From assembly GCA_904063045.1 (NCBI GenBank), contig CAJFCJ010000014.1, positions 620,001 through 684,000 on the forward strand: a stretch of 64,000 bases of DNA. Direction: 5' to 3'. This document shows positions 10,901 through 41,945 of the stretch, one piece after another. Source of the stretch: Dimorphilus gyrociliatus (lineage: Eukaryota > Animalia > Annelida). The first letter of the stretch is position 1, and each line of letters starts with the position of its first letter. The notes under the pieces were generated by a model. That model saw only the letters and a program-made list of their open reading frames with translations. It was not told where the DNA came from and searched no databases. The position numbers were made by a program, and so were the translations under genes.

Positions 10901-13900
10901 TCTTGTGCTACTGCTCTTATTCAAACGGAGGATAAGTCCATTTATGAGGCAATTGTGGTAAAAAGTAGTGATTTTCAAATTCAATCTGAAGCTTTGACGA
11001 AAGATACCATTTTAGTCATTTTATCTAGAAAAATGGTAGAAGATTTGCATCTAAAATCAGAGCAGACTTTAAAAGGTCGTTTGCAATTTATTGTTGACTC
11101 GGAATCGTTTCGTTCTCATCTCTTCGCAGTGGAGAAAATTGTTGAATTCAAAGTTCATGACCGACTTTTTCCTAATACCAAAAATCTTTTGAATATAACT
11201 CGTCTACCAAAAATCGACTGGTCCAGATACGGATTTAAAGAGCCGAATACCCAACAACAAAAGGTTTTGGATAGAGTGATGTCACCGCCTCAGAGAGTAA
11301 ATCCTCTACTGTTAGTCTACGGTCCTTTTGGCACGGGAAAAACTGACACACTTGCCAGAATAACTGAATATGCTTTAGAGAGCTGTGATTCTAGTAGAAT
11401 TCTCATTTGCACTCATGTCAATGTTACTGCTGATATGTACATTGCAAAGTATTTTCATCAGAGACACAAGAAGATTTTACGAGTTGTTGATCCTCGTCGT
11501 TGGGTTTCAACCATAAATCAGCACAACAGAGAATACTGTTTGATGAATGATTCTCAACAGCATTTTAGACTTCCAAGCAGAGAAGAGGTTCGAAGTAATC
11601 GAATAATTATATGCACAACCGCAATATCTCTAGAACTCTATAAGTGAGTATTCATTGATTAGCAGCCGATGATTAATGTGAAGTTTATTCCTTATTATTA
11701 TTATCAACAGGTTAGGATTACGTGGAGAATTTACTCACATTCTGATTGACGAAGCTGGACAAATTCTTGAATGTGAAGCAATCATGCCATTACTTCTTAG
11801 TACTGATCAAACAAAAGTCATTTTGGCTGGTGATCATATGCAAATGACTCTACCGGTGAGGTCACCTTTAACTAGAAGCAAACAGTTTCATGTCTCTCTG
11901 TTAGAGAGGCTTGCTCGTTATTATACGGCATCTAATCAAAGCGTAACTGAGAGAGAAAGATGTTGTATCCTTTTCAATGAAAATTACCGAAGCCGACCGG
12001 AAATCTTGCAATTCCTTTCACAAAATTTTTACAAAGATAAAGCAAACATAACGTCTGTTGGAGAATTTCCACATTCAAACAAACCTTGTTTGTACTTTTA
12101 TCACGAAAACGGAAAGGAGGAGTTTGTAAATTTATCATATCGAAATATGGTAGAATTCAGTGCAACTTGTACAATTATCAAAGAACTCGTTGAAAAAGAA
12201 AACATTTTGTCCAGTAAAATATCTGTAATTGTATATTATAGAGAGCATATACAACTTTTAAGACGTTATTTGAGACGAATGCAGTATGGAGATGTAACGG
12301 TTCTAAGCACAGATGCTGTGCAAGGACAAGAATACGATATTATAATTATAAATACAGTAAGAACGAAGGAAACAGAAAGTGATGATGAACTGTTACTAGG
12401 CTTTCTCTCAGATCCAAATTTGGTTAATACAGCTCTATCAAGATCACGTGATCGTATTATCGTTATTGGCAATGCTACGAGTTTGATACAAATTGGAAAA
12501 TGTCAGAATTTATGGAGAAATTATATACAGCATTGTTTATCCAAAAATACAGCATTTCATCGAAATATGACAAGCGAAGAATTCAAATCGCTTCTTCATA
12601 GAAGAGAAAGAAGTGACAGTTTCGAATGGGAGAGGAAGATTGACGGAGACGTTATTCTTGAAAAATTAGGTGAAATGGACACCAGACATTCTCACAGCTC
12701 CACCAATGTAAGAAATGCGCGTAAACAATGGACAAAAGTAGATATTGAACAACAGCGACCAAAAGGACGACGTTTGATTCATGAAAGTGACGTTGATGTT
12801 GAAATGACAGCCGAAGATGCAGATTCTATACGACAATCTCAAGATTGGAGAGTTTTCGAACGATATCAAAGTAAAGAGTATCTTTCTCGGCTCTTAGAAG
12901 AGTCAGGGCATAGATATAAATTGTGTAAAATGTTTATAGTCACTGTAAACAACACGTGGGCCGAATATCAAGAAAACGGAATATACTACAAGGTTTCAAT
13001 TGATGGTTTAAAACATAGAGGCAGATCTTTTCATAATGACACTGTTGTTGTGGAAATACTTAGCGATATAAATAAAACGGAAGATATGTTTGGTAAAGTA
13101 GTTGGTATCTGGGAGAGAGAGAAGGATCCACGTCGATCACTATTTGTATGTTGGCCAGATATAGTTCCAGGAATGGCTATTCCATTAGATCACTCGATGC
13201 CAAAATTCTCATTATTTTCGCCTAGAATGAAAGATCACAAGACACAAAGGAAAATGAACAGGATTTCGATATACAGAATGACTCGTGATGACCATATCGA
13301 GTATGTGAATGACGAAATAGTTGATGCAGCCGATCCTGACAAATACGTGTTTGTTGTGAGATATTTAAAATGGAAGACGACTTGTTTGCATCCTCTGGGA
13401 GTTGCTGTTAGAGCTATAAAAGTTGGTGATAACATTGAAACGATAGATAAAATACTGAGAATTGAACACAACGTTCCAAGTGAAACGCAATCGGCTGTGA
13501 AAAATATTGTGAAATCGTATGAAATGTATAAATATTCTCTTCCAGAAGAGGCGACGAGGAATAGAACAGATTTGACAAAAGAATATATTTTCACCATAGA
13601 CCCTAAGGGATCTAGGGATCTCGACGACGCAATATCGTTCGAGGAAATAGGTGATGACAAATTACGAGTTGGAGTCCACATTGCCGACGTTGGATACTTT
13701 GTTAACAAAAACAATAGTGAAAGTCTATACAACTCTGCTTTACAAAGGGCAACATCTATGTATAGCAGAATAGGAGCGGTGACACACATGTTACCCGATG
13801 AATTGTCAAGCAATATCTGTTCTCTGCTACCTGGAGAGAAGCGATTAACTAAATCAGTATTTTTCACAATCACTTCAACCGGAGAAGTAGAGGACGAAGA

Positions 13901-16900
13901 AGATCCTTTTAATAGTTTTATTCAATCGAAAAAACAATTTACGTATGAAGAATTTCAAAAGATTCTCGATGGAGAAAACGACTTTTATATTAATTTCAAC
14001 AAATTGAAGATATTTACCAAGAAAATGAGGATAAAGCGACTGGGGAACAATGCATTTTCAACGACAGATGAACGTGAGAATTGGTCCTCTGTCGATGCGC
14101 ATCATCTTATCGAAGAGTTAATGATTGCTACAAATTCGATGATTGCTTTGTTTCTCAACAAAAATGTACCCTGTTTTCCGATAAGACGACAGAAAGCTCC
14201 AGATGAAGAATCGATGGACGAGTGGAAGAGTAAGTATAAAAAACATGCCGTCACCTCTTTTGAATTAAGGCATGCATTCTTGGGTTATGGAAGAGTATGC
14301 TCTTGCCAGAATACATGCCTATGTATTGAAAATTTGGAAGAAATCAATGAGAATGATAATGTAAAAATAACAAAGGAATGTTGGGCAAGAATTAAAAGAT
14401 TATTGAAAGTGAAAAAAGTGGAAAATATACGGGAGATAATACAAATAGTTAATGATGCCAATAGTTTACCTTTCCATAAAATGGGTCTAGTTGATTTATG
14501 GCACATTAACAGAAGTGGTGAATTTGCCCTTAGCACCGCTGATGAAGAAGATAAAATTCATTACGCTCTGAATAAAAGTATTTACACAAACTTTACAAGT
14601 CCAATAAGAAGATTTGTAGATCTTGTTAATCATTTACTTTTGGAATCTATATTGAATGATTCTCAAAGACATTCACTGTCGACAGACGATCTTGATGAAA
14701 TTACAGATATTTGCAATATAAAATCGAAAAAAGCAAAAGCATACGAAAAAGATACCGTAATTCACGGACTGGCTCTTCAGTTAAAAGATGTTCCATTGGT
14801 CACTCCAACAACTCTTCAATCCATCAATTGCAAACGTAGACATTTGGAAGTTAATCCGTTAAACTTTAAATGGATACAAGATAGAGAAAAATTCCTATCT
14901 TTTTCTTCTTTGAGTTTAACCAAAAGTCCAATAGTGAATGAAGAAGATGAATCAGTTTCTCTCTACTGGAGAGAGAGAATTTACGATCTCGATGCTAATA
15001 TGACTAAAGAATATAATACGGGAAACAGAATAGACTATAATTGTAAAAACTACAATGCTAATATCAACCTACAATCGTGGTTAGATATTCTCCAATCGTC
15101 GAAGAGTGATAACTACGAAGATTTATATAAAAGTATTGCAAACGCTTCGGAAGCTTTCATTCGTAAAAATAAGAATTCTGTTGAATTGTCGAGTGAAATT
15201 CCCATGGAAAAGAGAATGCAACGTGAAAATGCACAGAAAAATATATTATGCCTGAGGGAAAATGAACATTTCGTTGATTATACATTAACCTTAAAGAGGG
15301 GAGAAGTATTCAATATTCAAATTAGCCCACGAAATTTTCGAAGACTTTTAATTCCATCCTTGCAATATCTAAAGATAACACGAAAGCATGGTGTTTGTCT
15401 TGAACACTTACAAAATCCACTATGTTTTACTGATAGACGTGTCTATCCGGCTGCGAAAGTAACATATAGAGACGTTCGAGAATATTGCGGTTTGTGGTTA
15501 CCACTTTTAAATCTGGAAGCAGTAGAGTCTGCCATAGCTGATGGTGTAAATTTTACTGTTAGAAATGTTCCAATTGAGTGGACAAAATATGATGAAAATG
15601 AGGATGATTACGAAGGAACAATGGAAATTGGTGCATTTTTCTTTAACGATAGAAAATTAAACATCGAAGTTGGCGATTATATTTGTATAAAGTATTATAA
15701 TATTATGAAAGATGTAAAATTTGAAAGCAACATAATGCCTAGCCTAGAAAAAAACATGTTGAAGGAAGAAGCAGTTTGGATATGTCACGCCATCTGTAGT
15801 TCCAAAAATCTTTTTTCAAATGGACAACAAATCAATGAAAGATTAAATATTATACCTGAGCATCTTTTCCCTGAAGAACCTAACACTGGCAAAATAAGGA
15901 TGGATTTTGAAGTAAAGTCAATGAGCAACCGACCCCCGAAAGATTTTTGGAGCAGAAGTAAAGACACCCCCGCTACAATTTCAATTCATCATTTGCCTTA
16001 TAGCGACTCAGTTAAATTTTTAACTTTAAGGAATCTTCTTAGAGTTGAAGATGAATTTATTCATGAAATTGTGGAAGGACGTATTCATGATAACAACAAT
16101 GATAAAACACTTTTGAGTTTAAAGACGAATGATTACCTGAAAAAACCAAATGAGGATCAAGAGAAGGCTATTCGAAGAGCAATAACAAATCAATTTACTC
16201 TTATTCAAGGACCTCCAGGCACTGGAAAAACTCAGACAAGCGCTCAACTTATCTATCAGTTATGGCATATCAATAAAAGTAAGCATAGGGAAGAGAAAAT
16301 CCTTTATTGCGGTCCATCGAATAAATCAGTTGATGTTATTCTTAGTAAGTTGTTAAATAGGTGATATTGCATATTATGAATATGATTTTCTATTCTTTTA
16401 TAGAACATTTGCAGAATTTAAAGTCAGAAATAAATTATGTAAGAATTGTCAGTTCGGCAATTGAAAATGCAAATTATCCAGTACCAGGCTTTATTGCACA
16501 TGGTAAAGCTGAATCTAATATAGATGCTGAAAGTGAAATGATTCAGAATAGAGACCGAGTCTTACATTTCGAGATAAGATCGAACGGTATGCCATATGCC
16601 AACGAATTGAAATATTACGATGAGTAAGTAGAGGCGATATAAATTTATAATATATTTTTTATCTACATTTTCTTGTTTTTTCCGCAGGCTTTTTAAGAAG
16701 GCAAAGAACAAAAAAGTCGACATATTTCACACTGACATTCGAAAGTACAAAAGGTGTCTGACTCGTGCAAAAAAAACGTATTTAAGAGACGTTGAAGTCA
16801 TTTTATGCACAACTGCCTTGTCTCCTCTCAAAATCCTTGACAATGCACAAATAGGACAAGTAATTGTAGATGAAGCAGGAATGTGCACGGAGGCTGATGC

Positions 16901-17809
16901 TCTCATTCCTATTGTACATCACAATCCATCTAAAGTTATCTTAGTCGGTGATCATAAACAACTTCAACCAATTATCAAGAGTAGACGTGCAGCTCTTCTT
17001 GGTCTAAAGCAAAGTCTTTTTGCTAGATACGCGAAAAAGCTTGATACAAATATGCTTACGAAGCAATATAGAATGCATCACAGTATCGCTGAGGTTCCAT
17101 CTCAAATATTTTACAATGGAAGATTGAAATCTCCTCTTCCTTGGCAAAATTCAAAACCTGAGTTGTCTATTTGGCCTAATAGTAGTGTTGCGTGCGCATT
17201 CTGCGACGTGGTAGGGAAGGAAGAAAGTGAATTGGTTTCTACAGCTTCCGCCAGTGAAGCATCAAAAAGAAATGTTGAAGAAGCTATGCATACTGTCAAA
17301 GTAGTCAAATGTCTCTTATCGAAAAAACAAGACAGAAAAGATATAGTAGTTTTAACGCCATATCGGGCTCAAGTTGAAGAGGTCAAACACCAATTGAAAG
17401 AAGCCAGCAAAGAGTTGAAATGGAAGAAATGTGCGATAGAAAAAATTGAAGTTCAAACAGTAATCAAGTCGCAAGGATCCGAATGGAAATACGTTGTACT
17501 AAGTTGCGTAAGATCTCTTCCATTAGATCAAATAGAAAGTGAACCAAACGAATCATGGACTGCAAGGGTTTTAGGATTTATAACGGATCCAAATCAATTG
17601 AATGTGGCTATAACAAGAGCCAAACACGGATTATTTATCATTGGTTTGTACAAAATGAAATACGTTATAGGTGAACAAAAATGCAAATAATTTTCTCTCT
17701 TATAGGTAACTCGAGACTACTACAAGCAAACTCTTCTTGGTCCACATTGATAGATTGGTATAGGAACGAAGGGTGCATTTTATCAGGGACAGACTCTTTC
17801 GCTATATAA
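7985..17809 (+). CDS. HELZ2: HELZ2-like protein copy A (CCCH/C2H2 zinc fingers, SF1 helicase, RNB, SF1 helicase), about 3150-3170 aa
   Basis: Exons 7985-10114, 10166-11643 (possible in-frame 60-nt intron near 10293), 11711-16344, 16404-16623, 16688-17643 and 17706-17809 join in frame through GT-AG introns. Motifs: GPFGTGKT/LIDEAGQ, TIDPKGSRDLDDA and FTSPIRRFVD (RNB), GPPGTGKT/IVDEAGM/NVAITRAK. Confidence 0.93.
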
Positions 17810-18635
17810 TCGAATCTAAATGTTTTGGTTCAATGTAAATAATTGGGTTTATTTGTAAAAATGTCTTGTTGCTAACAACATTTAAGAGAAGTTGATAAGA
17901 AATACTTGCAAATCTTTGTATCTCTCCGAAAACATCGAAATAAACTTATTAACTTACTCATGTTATTATTAATCAATTCAAAGAGAGAGACTGTTTTTTA
18001 TGTTCAGTTGATGAAATTGAAAGACATTTCCGCATAAAACAAATTCAAACACAATCTTGAACATGAAAGGTTTGAATTCTTTTTTTTCCTGATAAAAGTA
18101 TCAACTATGAAAACGAGATAGACAAATCTACGAAATAAAACAAGAATTTTCAAAAATATGGTCTTTATGTGGTCAAGTTTTCAGCCAAAGGCTTGCCTCT
18201 AACAAATCTGCAGAAATGTCTTTTGTTTTATGTAATGAAGTCAATCTTGGTATATGAAAGATACAGGTTATTTTTAAAATATTCTACGGAATATTGGTCG
18301 CTATTTCTGTCGAAATTTCATCTTGAACTTGAAGTTTTCTTCTGTTTTATGTACGATATGAAATACACTCCGATCACGTATACAACATGAGGAAAAGTTG
18401 ATAAGAAATACTTGCAAATCTTTGTATCAATTCCGAAGAGTGTACGGTTCCTCGACACGAACCAGTCTTCTCTTTATTTGTAATTTATTTTATTATATAT
18501 AATATAAACGCTACCTCTAAAAACAATTAAAGAAACATTTTGGTTGTTATAGCGGCCGTCTTTTGCTTGAATGTTCATTATTTTTTTCTGAACACAGATA
18601 AATCCCGACATAATTGTTAAAGAAAATTAAATTAT
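9137..18635 (+). repeat. Left arm of an about 9.5 kb near-perfect inverted repeat
   Basis: ORF pairs mirror with a constant coordinate sum of 50674 (10286/40388, 11784/38890, 16818/33856, 17809/32865), so there is no net indel between those anchors. Confidence 0.97.
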
Positions 18636-24658: not shown

Positions 24659-26274
24659 TATCTATTAGTGTGTTAAAAATTACGTTCAACAAAAACTTTA
24701 ACAAAAATGGCGCAAAGAAAAAACTGGTAGGTGGCTGTATGTTTTACTTTTTATTGTAGTATTAATTGTTTAAAATAAATTTGTAATTTATTCGATTTTA
24801 AGGGATTAATATAGCTGAATTATTTTTAAATAGAATGAAAACAGAGAAACTGATTGAAGATAATCCAAACAACTTGCAAATATTTAAATGAAAAGGCTAT
24901 TATGAAAAGATCTCCTAAAGTAATTAACGTTACAGATGGAGCCACATAACGTAGCATAATATATGAAAGGATGAAACATATAAACATTTATTTCAATAAC
25001 AGAGGAAATAAAATTAAAATGATCAAAATAGCAGTTAATATTTGAATTAGTTATGCATTTGAACTTTGCTGCTAAAGAAAGTCTTTCTTGAAATATATAT
25101 AACGGTTCGGATATCGAAGAGCCATCTACCGTCGTGAAGCATAGAGAAGGAGGTAATATTCAAATGAGGACGGAAAGTACAGAGACATATTCCTAGGAAT
25201 ATAGACTGTTGACTGTGTAACTATCTTCAGCTTTGCGCAGGAGCAATTCCATCGCCGATGAGGTTATCCGAGGCATGGATATTGCTAGTTGAAAACTATA
25301 CCCAATTCCCCGCGATATTCGCTTGAAATATTAGTGAGTAATCGCAATTTTTGTCGGCTAGAAATAGCCAAATAATTACGCTAAACAACGTATTAGAAGC
25401 CTTACTAGGGTGTGGAAGAAAACGGCCATAAATCTATGGTTTTTACCCTAAGCCAGCCCTTGTTTTTGTCTATCCTTTTTGAATACCCCTAACCATTAGA
25501 TGGGACCCTCCTAAGAACATATCAACAGTTATCTTATTCCTCCTAACCATTTCCCAGGCTGAAATCTAACTTTCAAATATTTCATTTATGGCCGTTTTCG
25601 ACCGGTCCCATGTTTTACATACCAGTCAATTTGGAAATTTAATGTCAGTAATAGTAAAACATGAATTATACCTTTAAAATTAGAGATATTTGCGTGTACT
25701 AGCTATCTTCAGCTTGAACAGCTTCAATTATTCGTATGCTGATATCGATAAATGGGGGATCGCTATCCATCTTTAAAATTAATGAACTAGAAACTTATTC
25801 AATATCAATAAAACTATCTTACCAGCGTCTATTGTTTCTTAATTACAGTTTATATAAATTGTCCTTGTCCCTTCAAGGAGACTTGTAAACGCATATTATG
25901 AACCCAGCGCCATCTAGATTTGATAAAAATAAGGTCTATGTGATTGATCGTATTTTTTCAACTACAATTTTAATAATAACATGAGTAAGTTGATAAGTTT
26001 ATTTCGATGTTTTCGGAGAAATACAAAGATTTGCAAGTATTTCCCTAAGGTTTAGGGGGTATTTATGAATAGAAAATAATGATAATCTACTGAATATATA
26101 TGAAGAATAATTCAAAGCGTTCAAGTTCAGGATTGTATTCGAGTTTGTTTTACAAGGAAATGTCTTTCAATTTCATCAACAAAACAAAGAAAACAATCTC
26201 TCTGTTTCGTATGTGAAAATTATAAAATAGATTAAAAGTTAGAACGACTGTGAGTGACTTTTTATGCTCTTGTT

Positions 26275-29200
26275 TCATTTTCTTCTTTTCTTCTTCTTCT
26301 CTACATCAACCGAAAAAAGTATGTCACTCTCATTCTTCGAATATCTTTTAAACAAAGATGTTTGACCTAAACTTTTTGGAAAAGTTTTGGTGTTGAATAT
26401 TAAACTTGGTGGTTTTCGATTACCAATAAGAATAATGTTTTCAGGTTGATAATTAAGTAGCGGGATAAGAGAATCCATTTCGTTACATTTTCCAGCGTCA
26501 TTTATAATAAGATGGGTAAACTTTCCAGATTGTTGAATACAGTCTAAACTGCAAAGTTTGCATGTTGTTATAACAACATCAGCCTCTTTTAATACGTCTA
26601 TTTTGGCTTTTTTAACCAACTCCTTATAATCTTTTCTATTGAAACTCACAGGGTTTCTACAAATAGAATATTATTTACATTATACTGTGTAATTATCTTA
26701 TCATGTTGATAAGAAATCGACTTACTTTTCCATTTCTAGTATTTCTTTCGAATACTTTCCTTCACGAATGATATGATGCAAAGCTTTCTCTTTCAATATG
26801 ACAGGTTCCTTTTTATCCTCGCTCGAAAAGAAACCCACCAGATCATTCCTAAGTTTACAATCGGCTTTTTCTGTAACGTCGCTAAATACTTGAATGTAGT
26901 TCAGTATTTTCGAGTCTTTTGTTGTTATTTTCATTAAATTTTCTAGCATTTTGATATGAAAGTTAAAAAATTTGAATTGTAATATTTCCAGTACTTACTT
27001 ATCACATTATTTCCAGATTTTGCTGATGGACAACAAATTAATATCCTCTCAGATGATTTATCTTTGTCTTCAAGTATTCCATACGCAATAAAAGTAATCA
27101 ATTTACCGTTTAATACGGTATCTGCTGATTTAATGACTGAAAATTGTCGTTGAAGAGCAAATTCAACTGCTTCTTTCTGTTTTTTTTTCAGGTTTTTTAA
27201 GCCTTTTATTTTGGAAACAATAGAGATTTCCTTCAAATCAACTTTCGAATTGGTATTGTAATTTGTTATTATTTTATGGATCAAAGTATCTTTTTTAAGG
27301 TTCGGCAGCAAATCATTCAATACTCTATCTTTTTCCTTATACTCATTCAACTTTCGATAAACTTTTATAGTAGCATTTAGATGATCGGGTGGAAAATCAT
27401 AATTTGAAGATGAGATAATCTCTATCTTTATGATATTATCATTTTCAATGCAGACTCCGTGACAAATCCAAAATGAGCTTTTATTCTCAAATAGATCATT
27501 ATTTAATGCGGTATTGGTATTGGGAACTTGTTGACTTATGCAAAAGTAATCTCCTTTTTCAATTTCTATCATTTTATCATTAAAAAGCGATTGTTCCAGT
27601 TGAAAGACGCAGTAACCGTCACGGTAACGAACATTAACGTTATTCAAAGTAAATCTATCACCATATTTAATGGCCATTTTAACACTTTGAAAATTTAATA
27701 CAGGTGACCATATTTTTAGAAATTCTTCTTTACTTTCGTAGGTTGTATCTTTCTCGTTTTCATAGTTGATACTTTCACAGAAACAATGAAATGGATCTTC
27801 AATATGATCCATACAAAAACCAAGATTATGCTTAATGAACAAATACTGCGGTCTAATTGTAGGCTTAGTTGTTGAAGAGCCAATAATGACATCAATAACA
27901 TTACCCTTTTCCACTAATAAAGAGAATGCCACAGTATCAATATCTTTGGAGCATACTCTGACTTCTTCTTCGTTTTCATCCGGGTAAATTTCATTTATTA
28001 GGTCAGATATTAAAGCCTCCTTTCCGTTTGGATTTTCAATAGTTTCCAAGATTATTTTCCATTGTTTTGTGGATATTTTAAGAACTTGATCCTTCAAATT
28101 GAAGTTAAACTCCGATTCGTCGCTCTCGTATTGTTGTTCATTTACATGGAAAATACGTTCTTTCCATTCTAATTTTAAGCTGTCACTTGTCATGCTCTTA
28201 TTAAATGTTCCAAAATTGACAATATTCAATTCAATATCATTCAGTTCATAAGTCTTTGGCTGAACTACACTGAGTAAAATTAAGTTTCTCTTCTTATCTA
28301 GGGAAATACAAGTAGCTTTCTTTCTTTTAGTGAATCCATTTCCATGATGCTTTTCCACAAATTCTTCATGTAAGGCATTAATTATGGAATTTTTATCGTT
28401 GAACGACATTAGAATTCGTAAGAAATCTTCTTCGCTAGCTGAAATATCCTCCGGATCCTCATAAAACAAACGATACTGATTAAATACATCAATGATTCTG
28501 GTCATAGGTGATGTAAATGTCATTATGGTTGAGTCTAATGAATAACTCTCATCATCGACTTTGAATTTAGCAAAATGAGGTGATCTCTCGATAAAGGAGA
28601 GTTTTTCAAGAGGACGATGATCTATTTGTAGAAGGATTTTTCTTATAGTTTCGTACTTTTTCTGAGCCAAATTAATTCTAATAATATTCCATAATTCCTT
28701 TATAAAAACAATATTGTCATCTGTTGGAACGTGGCTTTCATTATCTTTATCATACGTAACATTCTTTCCGTTTGATTTAATAGTCCACCATTCTTCAACA
28801 TGTCCATAAGGGACATAGTCTTTATCATTTTGCAGTAATAGTTGAGTTAAAGCAACATTTGCTTGAATGTGAAGTTCTTGAACCATTAATAAAGCATCGT
28901 ATATATCCCATTTCTTGAAGGCAATATCTTCTGAGTAATTTTGATGATCAAGTCTTTGCTTTCTTGAAACTTTCGAGAATTCATACAGTGCACGTAAATC
29001 AGGGTAATCTTCAATTTCATTATCTATGACTTGTTGGACCTTCTCGTAGGTGATGACTATAGGTTGTCTAATTTTAAGACTTTTTTCTTCCTTATGCTTT
29101 ATTTTTGTCGTTTTACTGTTATATTGAAAAAATATGGAAATAGTATGGACATAGCTGTTAAAACTTGGATGACGTTCCATTTCGCTTTTATCGAAGAGAG

Positions 29201-30170
29201 GTAAAGTAGCATTTTCGCCAAAATTAAAAGATCTTCCTTTATATAAACTCTCCTTAAAATGATCTGATTCAATATAGAATGAGGCGTCGACTATATGGAT
29301 GCCAATTAAGTATTCGTTCTTTCTTAAAGATTGTACAGAGAACATACATTCAATTTCGTTGTCTGTTGATTGACTTTCTGTTATGATATATGATTTTATT
29401 GACCGGTCGAAGGCGTATTGTTTTGTTTTGCTAAGTTGCGGGAGTTTAGACTTTATCTCAAAAACTGGTTGTGTTATTTTTAAAATCTGTTGAAGTACTT
29501 CCGGATAAAACAAATATTCTTTTTGAATCTTACCAACAGTCAGACACAATGGACAATTAAACTCACTGTTCCACTTGAGATAGATACAAATGTAATAGTA
29601 TTTTTCTCTATCTCTTCGATCAATTATTTCGGACAGGGCCGTAATTTTACCTTCTTTAATTGGGTCAAATTTAAATACAAGTACACCATCGGAAATTGAC
29701 GTATCATTTCGTGATTTCACTGTATAACGATGGACACGATAAAGTGTTGGTATCTTCTTATCAAAGAAAGGAATCAGGTACTTTCCGTCTGGTTTACAAA
29801 TGTAATACGTGTATCTATAATCAGTAAACTTTACCAATAGACCTTCAACAAGAGCCTTTTGACAGTTAACTAATACTGTATCGTATTCGAATAGATTCGA
29901 TTGTTTTGTATTTACTTCAAAGGCTTTTCCCTTTTCATCGACGCCATACTTTTTGTTTTCCTTGTACCTTAAATACCGTTCTTTAAAAACGTCAGGTTTA
30001 TTTTCTAGTTTTTCTTTCAAACTGTCCAACATGTCATTTTCTCTAGTCCACCACGAATTTCCATCTTGTAGACGTAATGTTCTTGTATCATTTTCTGTCA
30101 AACGACTCTCAAAAGAATTCAACTCTTGCAGAATAATTGGTAAATCTGTGTTGTCGTCTCCGTTTGCCAT
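26275..30170 (-). CDS. Diverged, truncated HELZ2-like paralog C (pseudo-RNB plus partial pseudo-helicase), about 1256 aa
   Basis: Exons 30170-26999, 26942-26726 and 26656-26275 join in frame (3771 nt). Introns occupy positions and phases equivalent to copy A. Scaffold motifs IGIHIVDASFYI, FTSPMTRIID and ADVVITTC are kept, while catalytic motifs are degenerate. Confidence 0.85.
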
Positions 30171-30629
30171 CTTGTTATTGTTCGTTTCTCCAAAAGCGTT
30201 TTATACTAATGTTTAAATACTGTATATGCCGAATTTGTAGATATAAAAAATCAATACTGTATGAATGAATTTATCAATTGAAAATATAAAATGATTGTAT
30301 TATAAACCTGGACATCGTAAAGTTTGCTACATTAACTTTTCATTGATGATTAAAGTTGTTTATTGCTTTATCTTGTAGGAAAATAGTTTTAATTTGTCCC
30401 TGGTAAATTGCACCCTTCGTTCCTATAGAACAGCCAGGGGGCTATGTAAATTAATCGCATTTGTCAGCCACGGTTTTCATTTTCTTTTAACAATTATGTT
30501 GGGATTTGTCTGTGTTCAGAAAAAAATAATGAACATTCAAGCAAAAGACGGCCGCTATAACAACCAAAATGTTTCTTTAATTGTTTTTAGAGGTAGCGTT
30601 TATATCATATATAATAAAATAAATATAAT

Positions 30630-31706
30630 ATAAAGAGCTAAAAAGGATAAAAGATAAGCAAAGAAGTGGTAGACCGAAAAAAGTGACACCAAAGATGGAA
30701 AGGCAAATTACCAGGGCATCTAAATCATACCCCAAGTGGACGGCCCATCAGGTATTATATAATTCTGGTATACCTATATCTCTTTCTCTAACAACAGTGA
30801 AGCAGGCACTACGAAAAAATAACTTAAATGGGAGAATTGCAGCCAAAACACCTGCTTTATCTAAGAGGCAGATAATAAGTAGGAAAGAGTTCTGTAGAGA
30901 GAGAGAGAAAACTGGGGGATTGAAAATTGGAAAAAAGTAATTTTTTCTGATGAATCAAAGGTTGAGCTGCATCCTAGGAGAAGGGAGTTTGTTAGGAGGC
31001 CACCAGGTAAACGGAATGACCCCAAATATACCACAAAAACAGTAAAATTTGGGGGAGGGAATATAATGGTGTTTGGCTACATTAAGTTCAATGGAGATAG
31101 GGGCCTAGCTTTAGTGTCTAATCGCATGACAGCTTCGGATTATGTCAAAATTTTGAGCAGTCATGTTGTCCCAAATTATAGGAGAGGGGAAATTTTCAGC
31201 AGGATGGGGCTAGCTGTCATACAGCAGCCAGAACAAAAGCGTACCTCGAGAGAAAGGGAGTAGAAACACTGGATCCATGGCCAGCAAACAGCCCAGACCT
31301 GAACATAATTGAGCAAATATGGGGCATATGCAAAAAACGTTTAATGGCACGTAAGCCAAGAAACAAGGATGAGCTGTGGGAGATGTTCAGAGAGGAATTT
31401 TTTAAAATTTCAGAATTGGAAATTCAATTCTTATATGAGACAATGGAAAGAAGGCTTAGGGCAGTTGTAGAAGCTAAGGGTATGCACACAAAATATTAAG
31501 GCATTAAAAAATATAATATCCTGTAAATAACAGTCAAAATAACAACAAAAAAATACTTTTAATATTCTTTTAGAGTAATTTTTGTGATTGTAACAAGTAC
31601 TTATGCTCCCATTGAAAATAGGCCTACCACATTAAAGTACGGAAAGAGAAAGAAACAAGAAAATTTTTTGTTTTTGAGGTGTAACAGTGACTCACCGCCG
31701 GTACTG
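30630..31706 (+). mobile_element. 5'-truncated Tc1-family DNA transposon with a frameshifted DD35E transposase
   Basis: Motifs RSGRPKK, WKKVIFSDESK, VKFGGGNIMVFG, QQDGASCHT and WPANSPDLNIIE; stop at 31497-31499; terminus ...GCCGGTACTG at 31706. Confidence 0.93.
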
Positions 31707-32038
31707 TTTGAAGAATAATTCAAAGCGTTCAAGTTCAGGATTGGATTCGAGTTTGTTTTATACGGAAATGTCTTTCAATTTCATCAACAAAACAAAGAAA
31801 ACAATCTCTCTGTTTCGTATGTGAAAATTATAAAATAGATTAAAAGTTAGAACGACTGTGAGTGACTTTTTCGCCGTATACTATACAAAAATGGCGCAAA
31901 GAAAAAACTGGTAGGTGGCTGCATATATTTCAAGAAAGACTTTCTTTTCAATTATATTCATTTAAATTTTTCTTCAACAAAGAACATTCAAGCAAAAGAC
32001 TGCCGCTAGAGGGAGCTATTAATCGTATTTCGTCAACT

Positions 32039-35000
32039 ATAATTTAATTTTCTTTAACAATTATGTCGGGATTTATCTGTGTTCAGAAAAAAATAATGAA
32101 CATTCAAGCAAAAGACGGCCGCTATAACAACCAAAATGTTTCTTTAATTGTTTTTAGAGGTAGCGTTTATATTATATATAATAAAATAAATTACAAATAA
32201 AGAGAAGACTGGTTCGTGTCGAGGAACCGTACACTCTTCGGAATTGATACAAAGATTTGCAAGTATTTCTTATCAACTTTTCCTCATGTTGTATACGTGA
32301 TCGGAGTGTATTTCATATCGTACATAAAACAGAAGAAAACTTCAAGTTCAAGATGAAATTTCGACAGAAATAGCGACCAATATTCTGTAGAATATTTTAA
32401 AAATAACCTGTATCTTTCATATACCAAGATTGACTTCATTACATAAAACAAAAGACATTTCTGCAGATTTGTTAGAGGCAAGCCTTTGGCTGAAAACTTG
32501 ACCACATAAAGACCATATTTTTGAAAATTCTTGTTTTATTTCGTAGATTTGTCTATCTCGTTTTCATAGTTGATACTTTTATCAGGAAAAAAAAGAATTC
32601 AAACCTTTCATGTTCAAGATTGTGTTTGAATTTGTTTTATGCGGAAATGTCTTTCAATTTCATCAACTGAACATAAAAAACAGTCTCTCTCTTTGAATTG
32701 ATTAATAATAACATGAGTAAGTTAATAAGTTTATTTCGATGTTTTCGGAGAGATACAAAGATTTGCAAGTATTTCTTATCAACTTCTCTTAAATGTTGTT
32801 AGCAACAAGACATTTTTACAAATAAACCCAATTATTTACATTGAACCAAAACATTTAGATTCGATTATATAGCGAAAGAGTCTGTCCCTGATAAAATGCA
32901 CCCTTCGTTCCTATACCAATCTATCAATGTGGACCAAGAAGAGTTTGCTTGTAGTAGTCTCGAGTTACCTATAAGAGAGAAAATTATTTGCATTTTTGTT
33001 CATCTATAACGTATTTCATTTTGTACAAACCAATGATAAATAATCCGTGTTTGGCTCTTGTTATAGCCACATTCAATTGATTTGGATCCGTTATAAATCC
33101 TAAAACTCTTGCAGTCCATGATTCGTTTGGTTCACTTTCTATTTGATCTAATGGAAGAGATCTTACGCAACTTAGTACAACGTATTTCCATTCGGATCCT
33201 TGCGACTTGATTACTGTTTGTACTTCAATTTTTTCTATCGCACATTTCTTCCATTTCAACTCTTTGCTGGCTTCTTTCAATTGGTGTTTGACCTCTTCAA
33301 CTTGAGCCCGATATGGCGTTAAAACTACTATATCTTTTCTGTCTTGTTTTTTCGATAAGAGACATTTGACTACTTTGACAGTATGCATAGCTTCTTCAAC
33401 ATTTCTTTTTGATGCTTCACTGGCGGAAGCTGTAGAAACCAATTCACTTTCTTCCTTCCCTACCACGTCGCAGAATGCGCACGCAACACTACTATTAGGC
33501 CAAATAGACAACTCAGGTTTTGAATTTTGCCAAGGAAGAGGAGATTTCAATCTTCCATTGTAAAATATTTGAGATGGAACCTCAGCGATACTGTGATGCA
33601 TTCTATATTGCTTCGTAAGCATATTTGTATCAAGCTTTTTCGCGTATCTAGCAAAAAGACTTTGCTTTAGACCAAGAAGAGCTGCACGTCTACTCTTGAT
33701 AATTGGTTGAAGTTGTTTATGATCACCGACTAAGATAACTTTAGATGGATTGTGATGTACAATAGGAATGAGAGCATCAGCCTCCGTGCACATTCCTGCT
33801 TCATCTACAATTACTTGTCCTATTTGTGCATTGTCAAGGATTTTGAGAGGAGACAAGGCAGTTGTGCATAAAATGACTTCAACGTCTCTTAAATACGTTT
33901 TTTTTGCACGAGTCAGACACCTTTTGTACTTTCGAATGTCAGTGTGAAATATGTCGACTTTTTTGTTCTTTGCCTTCTTAAAAAGCCTGCGGAAAAAACA
34001 AGAAAATGTAGATAAAAAATATATTATAAATTTATATCGCCTCTACTTACTCATCGTAATATTTCAATTCGTTGGCATATGGCATACCGTTCGATCTTAT
34101 CTCGAAATGTAAGACTCGGTCTCTATTCTGAATCATTTCACTTTCAGCATCTATATTAGATTCAGCTTTACCATGTGCAATAAAGCCTGGTACTGGATAA
34201 TTTGCATTTTCAATTGCCGAACTGACAATTCTTACATAATTTATTTCTGACTTTAAATTCTGCAAATGTTCTATAAAAGAATAGAAAATCATATTCATAA
34301 TATGCAATATCACCTATTTAACAACTTACTAAGAATAACATCAACTGATTTATTCGATGGACCGCAATAAAGGATTTTCTCTTCCCTATGCTTACTTTTA
34401 TTGATATGCCATAACTGATAGATAAGTTGAGCGCTTGTCTGAGTTTTTCCAGTGCCTGGAGGTCCTTGAATAAGAGTAAATTGATTTGTTATTGCTCTTC
34501 GAATAGCCTTCTCTTGATCCTCATTTGGTTTTTTCAGGTAATCATTCGTCTTTAAACTCAAAAGTGTTTTATCATTGTTGTTATCATGAATACGTCCTTC
34601 CACAATTTCATGAATAAATTCATCTTCAACTCTAAGAAGATTCCTTAAAGTTAAAAATTTAACTGAGTCGCTATAAGGCAAATGATGAATTGAAATTGTA
34701 GCGGGGGTGTCTTTACTTCTGCTCCAAAAATCTTTCGGGGGTCGGTTGCTCATTGACTTTACTTCAAAATCCATCCTTATTTTGCCAGTGTTAGGTTCTT
34801 CAGGGAAAAGATGCTCAGGTATAATATTTAATCTTTCATTGATTTGTTGTCCATTTGAAAAAAGATTTTTGGAACTACAGATGGCGTGACATATCCAAAC
34901 TGCTTCTTCCTTCAACATGTTTTTTTCTAGGCTAGGCATTATGTTGCTTTCAAATTTTACATCTTTCATAATATTATAATACTTTATACAAATATAATCG

Positions 35001-38000
35001 CCAACTTCGATGTTTAATTTTCTATCGTTAAAGAAAAATGCACCAATTTCCATTGTTCCTTCGTAATCATCCTCATTTTCATCATATTTTGTCCACTCAA
35101 TTGGAACATTTCTAACAGTAAAATTTACACCATCAGCTATGGCAGACTCTACTGCTTCCAGATTTAAAAGTGGTAACCACAAACCGCAATATTCTCGAAC
35201 GTCTCTATATGTTACTTTCGCAGCCGGATAGACACGTCTATCAGTAAAACATAGTGGATTTTGTAAGTGTTCAAGACAAACACCATGCTTTCGTGTTATC
35301 TTTAGATATTGCAAGGATGGAATTAAAAGTCTTCGAAAATTTCGTGGGCTAATTTGAATATTGAATACTTCTCCCCTCTTTAAGGTTAATGTATAATCAA
35401 CGAAATGTTCATTTTCCCTCAGGCATAATATATTTTTCTGTGCATTTTCACGTTGCATTCTCTTTTCCATGGGAATTTCACTCGACAATTCAACAGAATT
35501 CTTATTTTTACGAATGAAAGCTTCCGAAGCGTTTGCAATACTTTTATATAAATCTTCGTAGTTATCACTCTTCGACGATTGGAGAATATCTAACCACGAT
35601 TGTAGGTTGATATTAGCATTGTAGTTTTTACAATTATAGTCTATTCTGTTTCCCGTATTATATTCTTTAGTCATATTAGCATCGAGATCGTAAATTCTCT
35701 CTCTCCAGTAGAGAGAAACTGATTCATCTTCTTCATTCACTATTGGACTTTTGGTTAAACTCAAAGAAGAAAAAGATAGGAATTTTTCTCTATCTTGTAT
35801 CCATTTAAAGTTTAACGGATTAACTTCCAAATGTCTACGTTTGCAATTGATGGATTGAAGAGTTGTTGGAGTGACCAATGGAACATCTTTTAACTGAAGA
35901 GCCAGTCCGTGAATTACGGTATCTTTTTCGTATGCTTTTGCTTTTTTCGATTTTATATTGCAAATATCTGTAATTTCATCAAGATCGTCTGTCGACAGTG
36001 AATGTCTTTGAGAATCATTCAATATAGATTCCAAAAGTAAATGATTAACAAGATCTACAAATCTTCTTATTGGACTTGTAAAGTTTGTGTAAATACTTTT
36101 ATTCAGAGCGTAATGAATTTTATCTTCTTCATCAGCGGTGCTAAGGGCAAATTCACCACTTCTGTTAATGTGCCATAAATCAACTAGACCCATTTTATGG
36201 AAAGGTAAACTATTGGCATCATTAACTATTTGTATTATCTCCCGTATATTTTCCACTTTTTTCACTTTCAATAATCTTTTAATTCTTGCCCAACATTCCT
36301 TTGTTATTTTTACATTATCATTCTCATTGATTTCTTCCAAATTTTCAATACATAGGCATGTATTCTGGCAAGAGCATACTCTTCCATAACCCAAGAATGC
36401 ATGCCTTAATTCAAAAGAGGTGACGGCATGTTTTTTATACTTACTCTTCCACTCGTCCATCGATTCTTCATCTGGAGCTTTCTGTCGTCTTATCGGAAAA
36501 CAGGGTACATTTTTGTTGAGAAACAAAGCAATCATCGAATTTGTAGCAATCATTAACTCTTCGATAAGATGATGCGCATCGACAGAGGACCAATTCTCAC
36601 GTTCATCTGTCGTTGAAAATGCATTGTTCCCCAGTCGCTTTATCCTCATTTTCTTGGTAAATATCTTCAATTTGTTGAAATTAATATAAAAGTCGTTTTC
36701 TCCATCGAGAATCTTTTGAAATTCTTCATACGTAAATTGTTTTTTCGATTGAATAAAACTATTAAAAGGATCTTCTTCGTCCTCTACTTCTCCGGTTGAA
36801 GTGATTGTGAAAAATACTGATTTAGTTAATCGCTTCTCTCCAGGTAGCAGAGAACAGATATTGCTTGACAATTCATCGGGTAACATGTGTGTCACCGCTC
36901 CTATTCTGCTATACATAGATGTTGCCCTTTGTAAAGCAGAGTTGTATAGACTTTCACTATTGTTTTTGTTAACAAAGTATCCAACGTCGGCAATGTGGAC
37001 TCCAACTCGTAATTTGTCATCACCTATTTCCTCGAACGATATTGCGTCGTCGAGATCCCTAGATCCCTTAGGGTCTATGGTGAAAATATATTCTTTTGTC
37101 AAATCTGTTCTATTCCTCGTCGCCTCTTCTGGAAGAGAATATTTATACATTTCATACGATTTCACAATATTTTTCACAGCCGATTGCGTTTCACTTGGAA
37201 CGTTGTGTTCAATTCTCAGTATTTTATCTATCGTTTCAATGTTATCACCAACTTTTATAGCTCTAACAGCAACTCCCAGAGGATGCAAACAAGTCGTCTT
37301 CCATTTTAAATATCTCACAACAAACACGTATTTGTCAGGATCGGCTGCATCAACTATTTCGTCATTCACATACTCGATATGGTCATCACGAGTCATTCTG
37401 TATATCGAAATCCTGTTCATTTTCCTTTGTGTCTTGTGATCTTTCATTCTAGGCGAAAATAATGAGAATTTTGGCATCGAGTGATCTAATGGAATAGCCA
37501 TTCCTGGAACTATATCTGGCCAACATACAAATAGTGATCGACGTGGATCCTTCTCTCTCTCCCAGATACCAACTACTTTACCAAACATATCTTCCGTTTT
37601 ATTTATATCGCTAAGTATTTCCACAACAACAGTGTCATTATGAAAAGATCTGCCTCTATGTTTTAAACCATCAATTGAAACCTTGTAGTATATTCCGTTT
37701 TCTTGATATTCGGCCCACGTGTTGTTTACAGTGACTATAAACATTTTACACAATTTATATCTATGCCCTGACTCTTCTAAGAGCCGAGAAAGATACTCTT
37801 TACTTTGATAACGTTCGAAAACTCTCCAATCTTGAGATTGTCGTATAGAATCTGCATCTTCGGCTGTCATTTCAACATCAACGTCACTTTCATGAATCAA
37901 ACGTCGTCCTTTTGGTCGCTGTTGTTCAATATCTACTTTTGTCCATTGTTTACGCGCATTTCTTACATTGGTGGAGCTGTGAGAATGTCTGGTGTCCATT

Positions 38001-41000
38001 TCACCTAATTTTTCAAGAATAACGTCTCCGTCAATCTTCCTCTCCCATTCGAAACTGTCACTTCTTTCTCTTCTATGAAGAAGCGATTTGAATTCTTCGC
38101 TTGTCATATTTCGATGAAATGCTGTATTTTTGGATAAACAATGCTGTATATAATTTCTCCATAAATTCTGACATTTTCCAATTTGTATCAAACTCGTAGC
38201 ATTGCCAATAACGATAATACGATCACGTGATCTTGATAGAGCTGTATTAACCAAATTTGGATCTGAGAGAAAGCCTAGTAACAGTTCATCATCACTTTCT
38301 GTTTCCTTCGTTCTTACTGTATTTATAATTATAATATCGTATTCTTGTCCTTGCACAGCATCTGTGCTTAGAACCGTTACATCTCCATACTGCATTCGTC
38401 TCAAATAACGTCTTAAAAGTTGTATATGCTCTCTATAATATACAATTACAGATATTTTACTGGACAAAATGTTTTCTTTTTCAACGAGTTCTTTGATAAT
38501 TGTACAAGTTGCACTGAATTCTACCATATTTTGATATGATAAATTTACAAACTCCTCCTTTCCGTTTTCGTGATAAAAGTACAAACAAGGTTTGTTTGAA
38601 TGTGGAAATTCTCCAACAGACGTTATGTTTGCTTTATCTTTGTAAAAATTTTGTGAAAGGAATTGCAAGATTTCCGGTCGGCTTCGGTAATTTTCATTGA
38701 AAAGGATACAACATCTTTCTCTCTCAGTTACGCTTTGATTAGATGCCGTATAATAACGAGCAAGCCTCTCTAACAGAGAGACATGAAACTGTTTGCTTCT
38801 AGTTAAAGGTGACCTCACCGGTAGAGTCATTTGCATATGATCACCAGCCAAAATGACTTTTGTTTGATCAGTACTAAGAAGTAATGGCATGATTGCTTCA
38901 CATTCAAGAATTTGTCCAGCTTCGTCAATCAGAATGTGAGTAAATTCTCCACGTAATCCTAACCTGTTGATAATAATAATAAGGAATAAACTTCACATTA
39001 ATCATCGGCTGCTAATCAATGAATACTCACTTATAGAGTTCTAGAGATATTGCGGTTGTGCATATAATTATTCGATTACTTCGAACCTCTTCTCTGCTTG
39101 GAAGTCTAAAATGCTGTTGAGAATCATTCATCAAACAGTATTCTCTGTTGTGCTGATTTATGGTTGAAACCCAACGACGAGGATCAACAACTCGTAAAAT
39201 CTTCTTGTGTCTCTGATGAAAATACTTTGCAATGTACATATCAGCAGTAACATTGACATGAGTGCAAATGAGAATTCTACTAGAATCACAGCTCTCTAAA
39301 GCATATTCAGTTATTCTGGCAAGTGTGTCAGTTTTTCCCGTGCCAAAAGGACCGTAGACTAACAGTGGAGGATTTACTCTCTGAGGCGGTGACATCACTC
39401 TATCCAAAACCTTTTGTTGTTGGGTATTCGGCTCTTTAAATCCGTATCTGGACCAGTCGATTTTTGGTAGACGAGTTATATTCAAAAGATTTTTGGTATT
39501 AGGAAAAAGTCGGTCATGAACTTTGAATTCAACAATTTTCTCCACTGCGAAGAGATGAGAACGAAACGATTCCGAGTCAACAATAAATTGCAAACGACCT
39601 TTTAAAGTCTGCTCTGATTTTAGATGCAAATCTTCTACCATTTTTCTAGATAAAATTACTAAAATGGTATCTTTCGTCAAAGCTTCAGATTGAATTTGAA
39701 AATCACTACTTTTTACCACAATTGCCTCATAAATGGACTTATCCTCCGTTTGAATAAGAGCAGTAGCACAAGATCTCATCAAAAGGTAACCCTCGTTCGT
39801 ATCAGGTGAACAGATATTTTTCAGTGAAATTTGAGCGAAAAGTTCGCCCTTTAAAAAGGGCCATATAGTTTCTCCATTTGGGAAAACATAGTTACTCTTC
39901 AATTCTATTTCATATGTTCCATTGAACTTTTCCTCAACCAGTTTATAGGCCCATTTCTCTTCAAGCCATATCATTTTTTTCATAAATTCTTCGTAAGTTC
40001 TCCGTTTTAGAGTTAAACTTTCAAAATTCTTATCAAATATATCTTTTATGTCAAAGTCATTATTTTTCATTTCCCAGTCAGGCTGTTTAAGAGGCCTATG
40101 CTCGTAGAAATTAATCTTGCAAGGATCGGCATCCAATGAGGTAAAGGTATAATCATTACGTTTAGTTTGAATATCATTTAATTGCTTGATATTTAGTGTG
40201 TCAACTGCAAATTTCACTTCAGCTACTTTTTTGTCATCGACGAATTGAAGAATTAAAGATTGGCAATAAGAATAAGATAGATATTTCTCAAACTTCAAAA
40301 GAATATTATATTGAAAGCGATCTATAATGAAATATAAGTTTTTAATTATGTAATTGGAGTAACAGTTGTTTTTAGACCTACCATTCATATTTGAGATTTG
40401 AAGGGAACATCCTTTACAAAAGTGTTTCTTTTCTCCTTTACAGTCTATATAAAAACTTGCCCTTCCACAATCATAAAGGAGGAGAGCGTATTGAAGTTTC
40501 CTTTTCGACTGTTGAAATAAAGCATTTTATACTTAGTTTTGAGTAAAGTAAAGAGTCACCTCCAAAGTGATTGACCATTCATAATGTTCTTCTAGTGTTG
40601 ATATCTTCCTTTCGTCTTTGTTATTTGATATTCTAACGTAATTTAAATGTTCAACAAAATTTTTTGAATTCGACTTTTGATGTTTTACATAAGACATTTC
40701 CTCTTTTGACAATTTCTCTCTTTCATTATCGCATCTCTTCCTAATTCTCCATTCATTTAACTCTTCTTCACTATGCGCTCTCGGACAAAGATTCAATTCT
40801 TCAGGTTGATTTGAATATTGACATATTTTACCATCGAAATGATTGTCGCATAAACTATATCCAGACATCTTTTCAGCTGGATCCGGTTTACGAAAACGCC
40901 AATTCTCATCGTCCTTTGATTTGGAGCGATGTTTTGGAGAATCGCAATGATGTCTTAGCTGGGATTCCGAGTTACAAGTATTATTACATAGAAAACAATT

Positions 41001-41537
41001 ATAGGCTTTTTTTTGATTACTAGATAGTAAATCTGGAAATTCTTTCTTTATTAGTCCTGTTTTATCGCTGATATTCCAACCTCTTGAAGGTAAGTTATTA
41101 TTAGAGATTGTTGTATTTACTCTTTCATTGTCCGAAGAGTGTTTACTCTGAATTGGCTTGCAACTCTTGATAAGTTGATCAAACGCTTTACATTTATGTT
41201 TATGCATCCATTTCCAGACTCGAAGTTCTTCTTTTGAATGTGCAAATTTGCATTTATCATCAAGAGGACAAGTCTTTTGTCCAAGTTGATTTCGACATTC
41301 TTCAAGATATCGTTTTGGAGGCCATCGGATAATCTTTTTTTGATAAACAGCAACTTTTTGAATATCCCAATGATATTCATTTTCCTTGTAAACATGACAA
41401 GTTTTCGATGGATGTTCTCTTGTACATGTTTGTCCATTTTTAAAGCATTTGCTACATAGCCATTTTAAATCTGGTGGTGATTCTGTAACAATTTTGCTCC
41501 CTGTAGGCTTGAATTTATTGTTTGCACTTGAATATTT
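32039..41537 (-). repeat. Right arm of the about 9.5 kb inverted repeat
   Basis: Reverse complement of 9137-18635 with scattered substitutions. Confidence 0.97.
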
Positions 41538-41945
41538 CATGGGAAGTTCCGATCTTACAAAGGTTTCGTGATTTTTTCGAATACATATGGTGTCCGCATT
41601 TGAGATTTTATTAGTCGTTGCAGAATCATGTATTATCGTTGGTTCGTTATTTGAGTGAAAGTCTGATAAACCATTTGAATTATCAGTAGTATCAAGGATA
41701 TCAGTTTCAAGCTGGTTGTCTTTTCTCTCGAATGGTTCAATAGAAGGTAGTTGATTCCAAACCGGTAGTAGAGATGATTGTGGAATGTGTTGTTCGCTAG
41801 GAGTCATATTTCTGACACCCCCATTGAAAAAAGGCATTGGAGATGGACTAAATTGTGTAGTGAGAAGAGGAATATGAAATGGAAAAGGCGCATGGGGTGC
41901 TAGTTCCGGACGATATAGGAACATCTCCTGAGAATAATTGGGCAT
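32865..41945 (-). CDS. HELZ2: HELZ2-like protein copy B, about 2900-2925 aa
   Basis: Same exon structure and catalytic motifs as copy A. It has a distinct, shorter first coding exon (462 vs 710 codons) that lacks two CCCH modules. Confidence 0.93.

Follow-up and report, generated by a model that had tools for sequence, protein, structure and literature searches.

HELZ2 has recently been shown to be an interferon-induced RNB exoribonuclease, and its biology outside vertebrates is, to our knowledge, unexplored. It is established in fungi that inactive RNB proteins can be kept as RNA-binding proteins, as seen in the structure of Ssd1 (PMC8934651), and pseudonucleases evolved repeatedly in the Dis3L2 branch (PMC8097288). 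According to Huntzinger et al. (PMC10516660), activity was lost in some RNB proteins, and corals and molluscs have HELZ2. Here we describe DgyrCDS9792, a gene of the tiny marine annelid Dimorphilus gyrociliatus derived from the family of HELZ2 (human PRIC285/PDIP1, a 3'-5' exoribonuclease) and the invertebrate HELZ2-like genes. It is situated in a window of 64,000 nucleotides (contig CAJFCJ010000014.1 of assembly GCA_904063045.1, positions 620,001 to 684,000 of the forward strand), to which all coordinates below refer. We consider it reasonably probable that this gene is an old partial HELZ2-like duplicate which purifying selection, acting on frame and fold, has kept as a pseudo-enzyme.

DgyrCDS9792 resembles members of the HELZ2 family in the predicted order of its domains (OB-like, RNB, S1, linker and Upf1-like helicase 2), in two intron positions shared with a full-length copy nearby, and in a C-x2-H..C..H set and Trp residues. 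It differs from them in the absence of CCCH zinc fingers, of helicase 1 and of the second RecA domain (RecA2) of helicase 2, in its destroyed catalytic motifs, in a branch about 6x longer and in its length, 1256 aa compared with ~2600-3400 aa. Like Ssd1, which is among its best structural matches (7am1), it has a predicted RNB fold without the catalytic Asp residues in a gene that appears to be under selection, and judged from sequence and model it would belong to the RNB pseudonucleases, i.e. proteins with the fold kept, the catalytic residues lost and the gene selected. By descent, however, it lies outside the Ssd1 family, since it originated independently from animal HELZ2 and not from the fungal Dis3L2 branch, and it carries an extra dead half-helicase. 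Ssd1 has established RNA binding and a biological role, whereas any such role of DgyrCDS9792 would be a putative one.

Gene structure and domain content

The gene occupies 26275-30170 on the minus strand, and its three-exon frame of 1256 aa matches DgyrCDS9792 (P0001), annotated as a hypothetical protein, with 100% identity. The coding sequence (CDS) rebuilt from the window by joining 30170-26999, 26942-26726 and 26656-26275 gives the exact P0001 translation with 0 stops; splice sites, start codon and frame are all intact and both introns are of the form GTAAGT..AG. Exon 1 (26999..30170) codes for residues 1-1057 plus one nucleotide and carries an OB/CSD-like region, a degenerate RNB domain, S1, the linker and the first part of what is left of helicase 2; its reading frame corresponds to the 1075-aa open reading frame (ORF) at 26943-30170. 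Intron 1 (26943..26998, 56 nt, GT..AG) interrupts a Lys codon in phase 1, with the GTAAGT donor at 26998-26993. Exon 2 (26726..26942, residues 1058-1130) is followed by intron 2 (26657..26725, 69 nt, GT..AG, phase 2) and exon 3 (26275..26656), which codes for residues 1130-1256 and the TGA stop. Exon 3 contains the remnant of the first RecA domain (RecA1) with INDAG and GNRKPP, matched by Pfam AAA_11 with 2.8e-11, and a Lys/Arg-rich tail, EKKKKRRK. All these features are on the minus strand. Among public assemblies the 1256-aa product is on record solely in GCA_904063045.1, an exact look-up of the 1075-aa ORF in the public assemblies found nothing on record, and the supplementary files of the genome paper mention neither HELZ2, RNB nor the gene id.

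As a reference for comparison we modelled copy A, a full-length HELZ2-like gene of six exons and 3182 aa at 7985..17815 on the plus strand. All its RNB and helicase motifs are intact, and it comprises CCCH-type zinc fingers, helicase 1, the HELZ2 OB fold, RNB (with FTIDPKGSRDLDDA) and helicase 2 (with GPPGTGKT, VDEAG and GDHKQL). DgyrCDS9792 aligns with copy A residues ~1541-2950 at ~27% identity, and this level of divergence is even over all its domains. Its intron 1 has the identical position and phase, in the Lys codon, as the third intron of copy A (16345-16403), while intron 2 and the fourth intron of copy A (16624-16687) are both in phase 2 and lie ~6 residues apart where the alignment is gappy. 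All best HMMER matches of DgyrCDS9792 are HELZ2-like.

In Pfam, the protein matches RNB with 50.3 bits (cut-off 29.3), compared with 219.3 bits in copy A, together with pieces of AAA_11 and nothing else. The RNB domain, delimited by Pfam and by the match of the AF2 model, covers 28470..29390 (minus strand, residues 261-567) and is strongly degenerate. Pfam found no zf-CCCH, helicase 1 or AAA_12, which leaves the second helicase incomplete, with RecA1 and without RecA2. The family PF25049 OB_HELZ2 was also undetected by Pfam; the AF2 model has beta-rich OB/CSD-like domains which align to Dis3L2. The start of DgyrCDS9792 corresponds to the middle of copy A exon 3, and its end, at SLFKRY, comes soon after helicase 2 motif III, where RecA2 would be expected. 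When copy A was used as the tblastn query with E-values of up to 10 admitted, no relic of RecA2, helicase 1 or zinc fingers appeared beside the gene and no upstream coding remnant; the relic fragments that did appear, at 19516-19713 and 43245-43453, are unrelated to the missing parts. We also considered whether the Lys-rich C-terminal tail is transposon-encoded and rejected this, as the repeated element found there ends 9-12 nt beyond the stop codon.

An earlier note on this DNA, made from the sequence alone, had described a frame of 1256 aa that has no stops, lacks helicase 1 as well as the zinc fingers and the final RecA domain, and has orthologous introns. The splice, Pfam and the alignment are in agreement with the first two points. 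For the introns the statement is exact in the case of intron 1, in position as well as phase, and in the case of intron 2 extends to phase, the position being ~6 residues off.

Catalytic motifs and their degeneration in the family

Changes in motifs were read from pairwise and 49-sequence alignments. RNB motif I, FTIDPKGSRDLDDA, has become ITESQSTDNEIECM in DgyrCDS9792 (29343..29384, minus strand, residues 263-276), with S, E, E and C in place of the four Asp; motif II (MLP..CSL) is missing, and SPIRR reads SPMTR, its first Arg now being Thr. In helicase 2 the Walker A sequence GPPGTGKT has undergone a 4-residue deletion and reads SADT, and no GxxGxGK[ST] is left in the remnant KSADTVLN (27108..27131, minus strand, residues 1014-1021). 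Walker B, [IV]DEAG in the family and VDEAG in copy A, is INDAG (26491..26505, minus strand), where DE is replaced by ND, and motif III, GDHKQL in the family, is GNRKPP (26407..26424, minus strand). These are the changes the earlier note had listed (all four motif I Asp lost, Walker A and Walker B altered, GDH turned into GNR), and every one was reproduced in both types of alignment. Neither the set of residues that characterizes an active RNB exoribonuclease (four motif I Asp and motifs II-IV, including SPIRR) nor that of an active SF1 (Upf1-like) helicase (Walker A, DE, motif III and RecA2 motifs IV-VI) is found in DgyrCDS9792.

In human HELZ2, substitutions D1601N (third Asp) and R1923L (S-P-x-R-R motif IV) each abolish RNase activity, and the natural protein has Asn at one of the four Asp positions of motif I (PMC10516660). 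DgyrCDS9792 is altered at both positions essential in the human protein and at two further Asp positions, and its motif II is absent. From the chemistry of the motifs and the published human mutants we infer that the protein is inactive as a nuclease and as a helicase; hydrolysis of ATP is not expected because the P-loop, the Walker B Glu and RecA2 are absent. It could be argued that DgyrCDS9792 has remained enzymatic by means of an unusual active site, in which Glu might, for instance, take the place of Asp in metal binding. Glu is present at 2/4 Asp positions, one more Asp and one more Glu are nearby in the motif, and the human enzyme tolerates Asn at one of these four sites. However, Ser and Cys stand at the first and the fourth Asp position, motif II is missing, SPIRR has Thr for its essential first Arg, and an ATPase is structurally impossible with Walker A deleted and RecA2 absent, so that we regard this explanation as extremely improbable. 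With Upf1-like SF1 helicases (Upf1, Sen1/SETX, MOV10) the protein has in common its Pfam AAA_11 match, and the last third of its model (barrel, stalk and RecA1) can be superposed on Upf1 and Sen1, but without a P-loop, the DE of Walker B and RecA2 the protein cannot be a helicase.

Degenerate HELZ2-like ORFs are also present in the molluscs Bulinus truncatus (KAH9515064.1), Batillaria attramentaria (KAK7471580.1) and Dreissena polymorpha (KAH3873318.1) and in other eukaryotic contigs. Substitutions of motif I Asp, in some cases with degenerate Walker motifs, were observed in P0020, P0092, P0107, P0058, P0064, P0069, P0076, P0082, P0094, P0109, P0121, P0122 and P0140. Like DgyrCDS9792, these ORFs belong to the HELZ2 family and have substitutions in RNB motif I Asp and/or Walker motifs; unlike it, those which could be judged are full-length or are single large exons of full-length genes, with RNB Pfam E-values of 1e-30 to 1e-51 compared with 3e-13 in DgyrCDS9792. 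None of them is close to it in sequence. In D. gyrociliatus itself, DgyrCDS14125 (P0002, on another contig) and, in a related species, its ortholog P0023 (L006/L007) have no second motif I Asp (RMADDA and EFRDDA) and a degenerate motif II, with helicase 2 Walker A intact in both species; this third dinophilid HELZ2 lineage may be a conserved, partly degenerate nuclease. Loss of catalysis thus seems to be recurrent among HELZ2 duplicates, with DgyrCDS9792, truncated at both ends and with everything catalytic gone, the most extreme case. Our literature search turned up no account of a dead HELZ2 paralog, in line with the earlier note, which knew of none of a paired active and dead HELZ2 module; in the wider sense, RNB pseudonucleases are a known class (Ssd1), and degenerate HELZ2-like ORFs exist in molluscs.

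Probable past constraint on frame and fold, and age of the duplication

DgyrCDS9792 has 0/1256 in-frame stops, compared with 63-147 in the five alternative frames of this region. We simulated neutral decay of the homologous CDS of copy A at the local base composition, with 30 runs per level and frameshifts left uncounted. The runs averaged 24 stops at 80% identity to the starting protein and 84 stops at 27% identity, and 0/30 runs were stop-free at every level tested. The residues kept point in the same direction. In the retained part, 132 alignment columns reach a conservation of 80% or more among 48 HELZ2-like sequences. Of these positions, DgyrCDS9792 keeps the family residue at 59/99 outside the catalytic motifs compared with 7/33 inside (Fisher p = 2e-4), which is not what uniform decay would produce. 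All conserved Trp are kept (5/5), and so is the C-x2-H..C..H of the linker between RNB and helicase 2 (C786, H789, C877 and H904; window ~27459-27815, minus strand). This linker set is invariant or nearly so in all 42 aligned HELZ2-like sequences and may represent a structural zinc site; we know of no description of it.

The AF2 model, built with a 42-sequence alignment, is a complete multi-domain structure with mean pLDDT of 70.5 and pTM of 0.66. In Foldseek, the N-terminal 60% of the model matches Dis3L2, the Ssd1 pseudonuclease, Rrp44 and RNase R, and the C-terminal part matches Upf1, Sen1 and SETX. The structure prediction which the earlier note had proposed as a check thus returns a full fold with RNB-family and Upf1-like matches, and its remark that structural motifs are kept is in accordance with the conserved non-catalytic positions, the Trp residues and the linker Cys and His. 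From these comparisons it is well supported that selection, and not chance, has kept the frame open and the residues defining the fold in place through a very long period of divergence, during the bulk of the gene's history. The proposal that a dead protein is maintained by selection is in this way borne out, by frame and site pattern, for the long-term past.

It could be objected that the gene was disabled recently. In that case a diverged HELZ2 paralog, functional for a long time either as an active or as an already non-catalytic protein, would have been truncated in association with transposons and would now be an untranscribed, useless relic in which stops have not yet accrued, annotated ab initio. 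In our simulation a chance stop-free frame lasts for ~1% protein divergence, so a recent death would be invisible, and both ends of DgyrCDS9792 fall within ancestral domains or exons. On the other hand, splice sites, start codon and frame are intact, and the catalytic motifs decayed long before while the fold residues were kept, therefore the gene was non-catalytic and selected for most of its history. We consider a recent relic unlikely, although it is an alternative to be taken seriously, and its flanking sequences and relatives, considered below, bear on it as well.

Trees were made from 49 rows and, with greater care, from 17 rows. In both, DgyrCDS9792 is nested in the dinophilid HELZ2 clade with support of 99-100, together with copy A, DgyrCDS14125 and the orthologs P0009, P0176 and P0023 from Logan assemblies of related species. 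Its terminal branch has 3.4-3.9 substitutions per site, ~6x the typical length (medians 0.56-0.89). In the approximately unbiased (AU) test, DgyrCDS9792 as the sister of copy A alone was rejected (p = 0.0005), which excludes a post-speciation duplicate of copy A with explosive divergence, and a clade with copy A and P0009 was marginally rejected (p = 0.026). The duplication is therefore indicated to be older than the split from the species of SRR23372228, in which the copy A ortholog is 48% identical; long-branch effects could distort this placement. Contigs of relatives of D. gyrociliatus (L001 from SRR23372228, L002 from SRR23372216 and L008 from ERR14224705) carry HELZ2 orthologs of 48% and 35% aa identity with equal exon structure. 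In the scenario that we favor, a dinophilid HELZ2-like gene would have been partially duplicated, the copy comprising OB/CSD, RNB, S1, the linker and the first RecA domain of helicase 2. This copy would then have evolved ~3-6x faster than the intact paralogs and lost the residues for RNA hydrolysis and ATP binding, being retained as a coding gene by purifying selection. The product would be a pseudo-nuclease and half pseudo-helicase which could act only in a non-catalytic manner.

The long branch with the frame kept is also what could be expected of a decoy or dominant regulator in an arms race, in which antagonists of HELZ2, viral or transposon-encoded, drive the diversification of a protein that soaks them up or modulates the active copies. 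Such a role might also be suggested by the linkage of DgyrCDS9792 to two identical intact copies within a palindrome, by the recurrence of degenerate HELZ2 paralogs in molluscs, and by human HELZ2, which is reported to be interferon-induced and to restrict LINE-1 (PMC10516660; bioRxiv 10.1101/2022.03.26.485892). However, positive selection is here inseparable from relaxed constraint because synonymous sites are saturated at 27% protein identity to the paralogs. Divergence is uniform over the domains and not concentrated on the surface, and the composition has drifted to AT-rich codons, with a FYMINK (Phe, Tyr, Met, Ile, Asn and Lys) content of 38% compared with 33% in copy A, as weak constraint predicts. 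A decoy or regulator role is thus speculation, and as an explanation of the gene we consider it quite improbable. For the old, selected pseudo-enzyme the most likely role would be, by analogy with Ssd1, that of an RNA-binding or protein-binding scaffold.

The HELZ2 locus and the meaning of the gene

DgyrCDS9792 lies in the 13.3-kb non-palindromic spacer of a perfect inverted repeat of 9544 nt (9119-18662 and 32012-41555, 100% complementary). The second arm (32012..41555, minus strand) carries copy B, which equals copy A from 9119 onward, so that differences between the two copies are confined to the N-terminal heads, which lie beyond the arms. The earlier note had placed two active paralogs beside the dead one; there are indeed two intact copies, but these are one sequence present twice over most of its length and not distinct paralogs. 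The palindrome reflects either a very recent duplication, gene conversion or an assembly issue. The spacer also contains a plus-strand multi-exon gene and a full-length U4 spliceosomal snRNA gene (25229-25368, plus strand; Rfam RF00015, 105.5 bits), which is 93% conserved in L001.

Two families of short repeats, transposon-terminus-like and with copies 93-100% identical, bracket DgyrCDS9792 and also flank copies A and B on their 3' side. The first is present at 26101-26263, 31709-31871, 19277-19400 and 17980-18084, the second at 30426-30637, 20382-20593, 18470-18631 and 32043-32218, and both are at very high contig depth in the DNA run described below. The element at 26101..26263 ends 12 nt after the stop codon of DgyrCDS9792; it has a 98% identical copy at 31709-31871, and a part of it is repeated in inverted orientation, at 100%, at 19277-19400. 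It is probably a trace either of the rearrangement in which RecA2 was lost or of an insertion made later in the 3' flank. The element at 30426..30637, 96% identical to 20382-20593, lies 256 nt upstream of the ATG and sets the limit of the unique 5' sequence in which a promoter could lie. Fragments of HELZ2 are found elsewhere at the locus: a duplicated piece of the last exon within the spacer at 19516-19713 (plus strand, 64% aa identity), the helicase 2 Walker A region at 43245-43453 (minus strand, 70%), just beyond the right arm, and a weak mirror-image HELZ2 match on the left side at 6513-6614 (plus strand). The history of the locus is one of repeated HELZ2 rearrangement, and the truncations of DgyrCDS9792 may be transposon-associated, the C-terminal one possibly recent. 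The first two of these HELZ2 fragments, like the young repeats at both ends, are what would be expected near a gene disabled recently, although the repeated element itself ends outside the CDS.

Several observations weigh against an old gene kept by selection to the present. Elements with 98-100% identical copies lie 12 nt from the end of the ORF and 256 nt from its start, therefore the truncation could be recent and the gene newly disabled. The sole public run found to contain the sequence (~60 Mb of contigs, 93% of sampled words) is most likely genomic DNA, and over 25500-31400 its contigs lie, after filtering, on the flanking repeats only and leave the gene body uncovered. No transcript-derived copy of DgyrCDS9792 was found in a collection of 15 billion proteins. 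An exhaustive HMMER search of 1.84 billion cluster representatives revealed no ortholog closer than the paralogs; nothing exceeded 39% identity and, short fragments aside, none scored higher against DgyrCDS9792 than against copy A. Genomic contigs of a related species do contain orthologs of both other paralogs. The contig L001 is collinear with the window over ~17 kb, from copy A to 25331, and stops inside the U4 snRNA gene, 907 nt before the 3' end of DgyrCDS9792. The homolog alignment used for AF2 biases the model towards the family fold, which makes the fold weaker evidence. Finally, many residues that line the channel are lost (R2028G, Y1887N, R2169T and Y2171I in copy A numbering), which makes it less plausible that RNA is bound in the canonical RNB channel. 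The search for relatives was extended in other ways: look-ups with neighbouring small ORFs gave no contig longer than L001, a word-based protein search returned DgyrCDS9792 itself as the sole match, and tblastn with DgyrCDS9792 on all fetched loci matched only their intact HELZ2 genes. The missing transcripts and orthologs are also what a recent relic would predict.

The genome of D. gyrociliatus is very compact, 73.8 Mb (PMC7854359), and retention of a functionless gene of 3.9 kb in it would be unexpected. The species is cultured in the laboratory, and stage-specific RNA-seq and CAGE exist for it, which makes the questions raised here cheap to answer; if DgyrCDS9792 proves to be silent or stop-polymorphic, it would be merely a well-preserved relic in a rearrangement-prone HELZ2 locus. 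A broader possibility, which we put forward as a tentative and rather unlikely one, is that HELZ2, a nuclease-helicase directed against viruses and retroelements, repeatedly spawns dead paralogs in lophotrochozoans which persist because they assist the active enzyme without catalysis, whether as decoys, as RNA-binding adaptors or as regulators, and that the D. gyrociliatus gene, placed between identical active copies in a palindrome, is the most extreme and tractable example. If DgyrCDS9792 is indeed a long-maintained HELZ2 pseudo-nuclease, it would be a second, independent origin of an RNB pseudo-enzyme after the fungal Ssd1, and it would point to non-catalytic functions in a gene family of the innate-immunity type.

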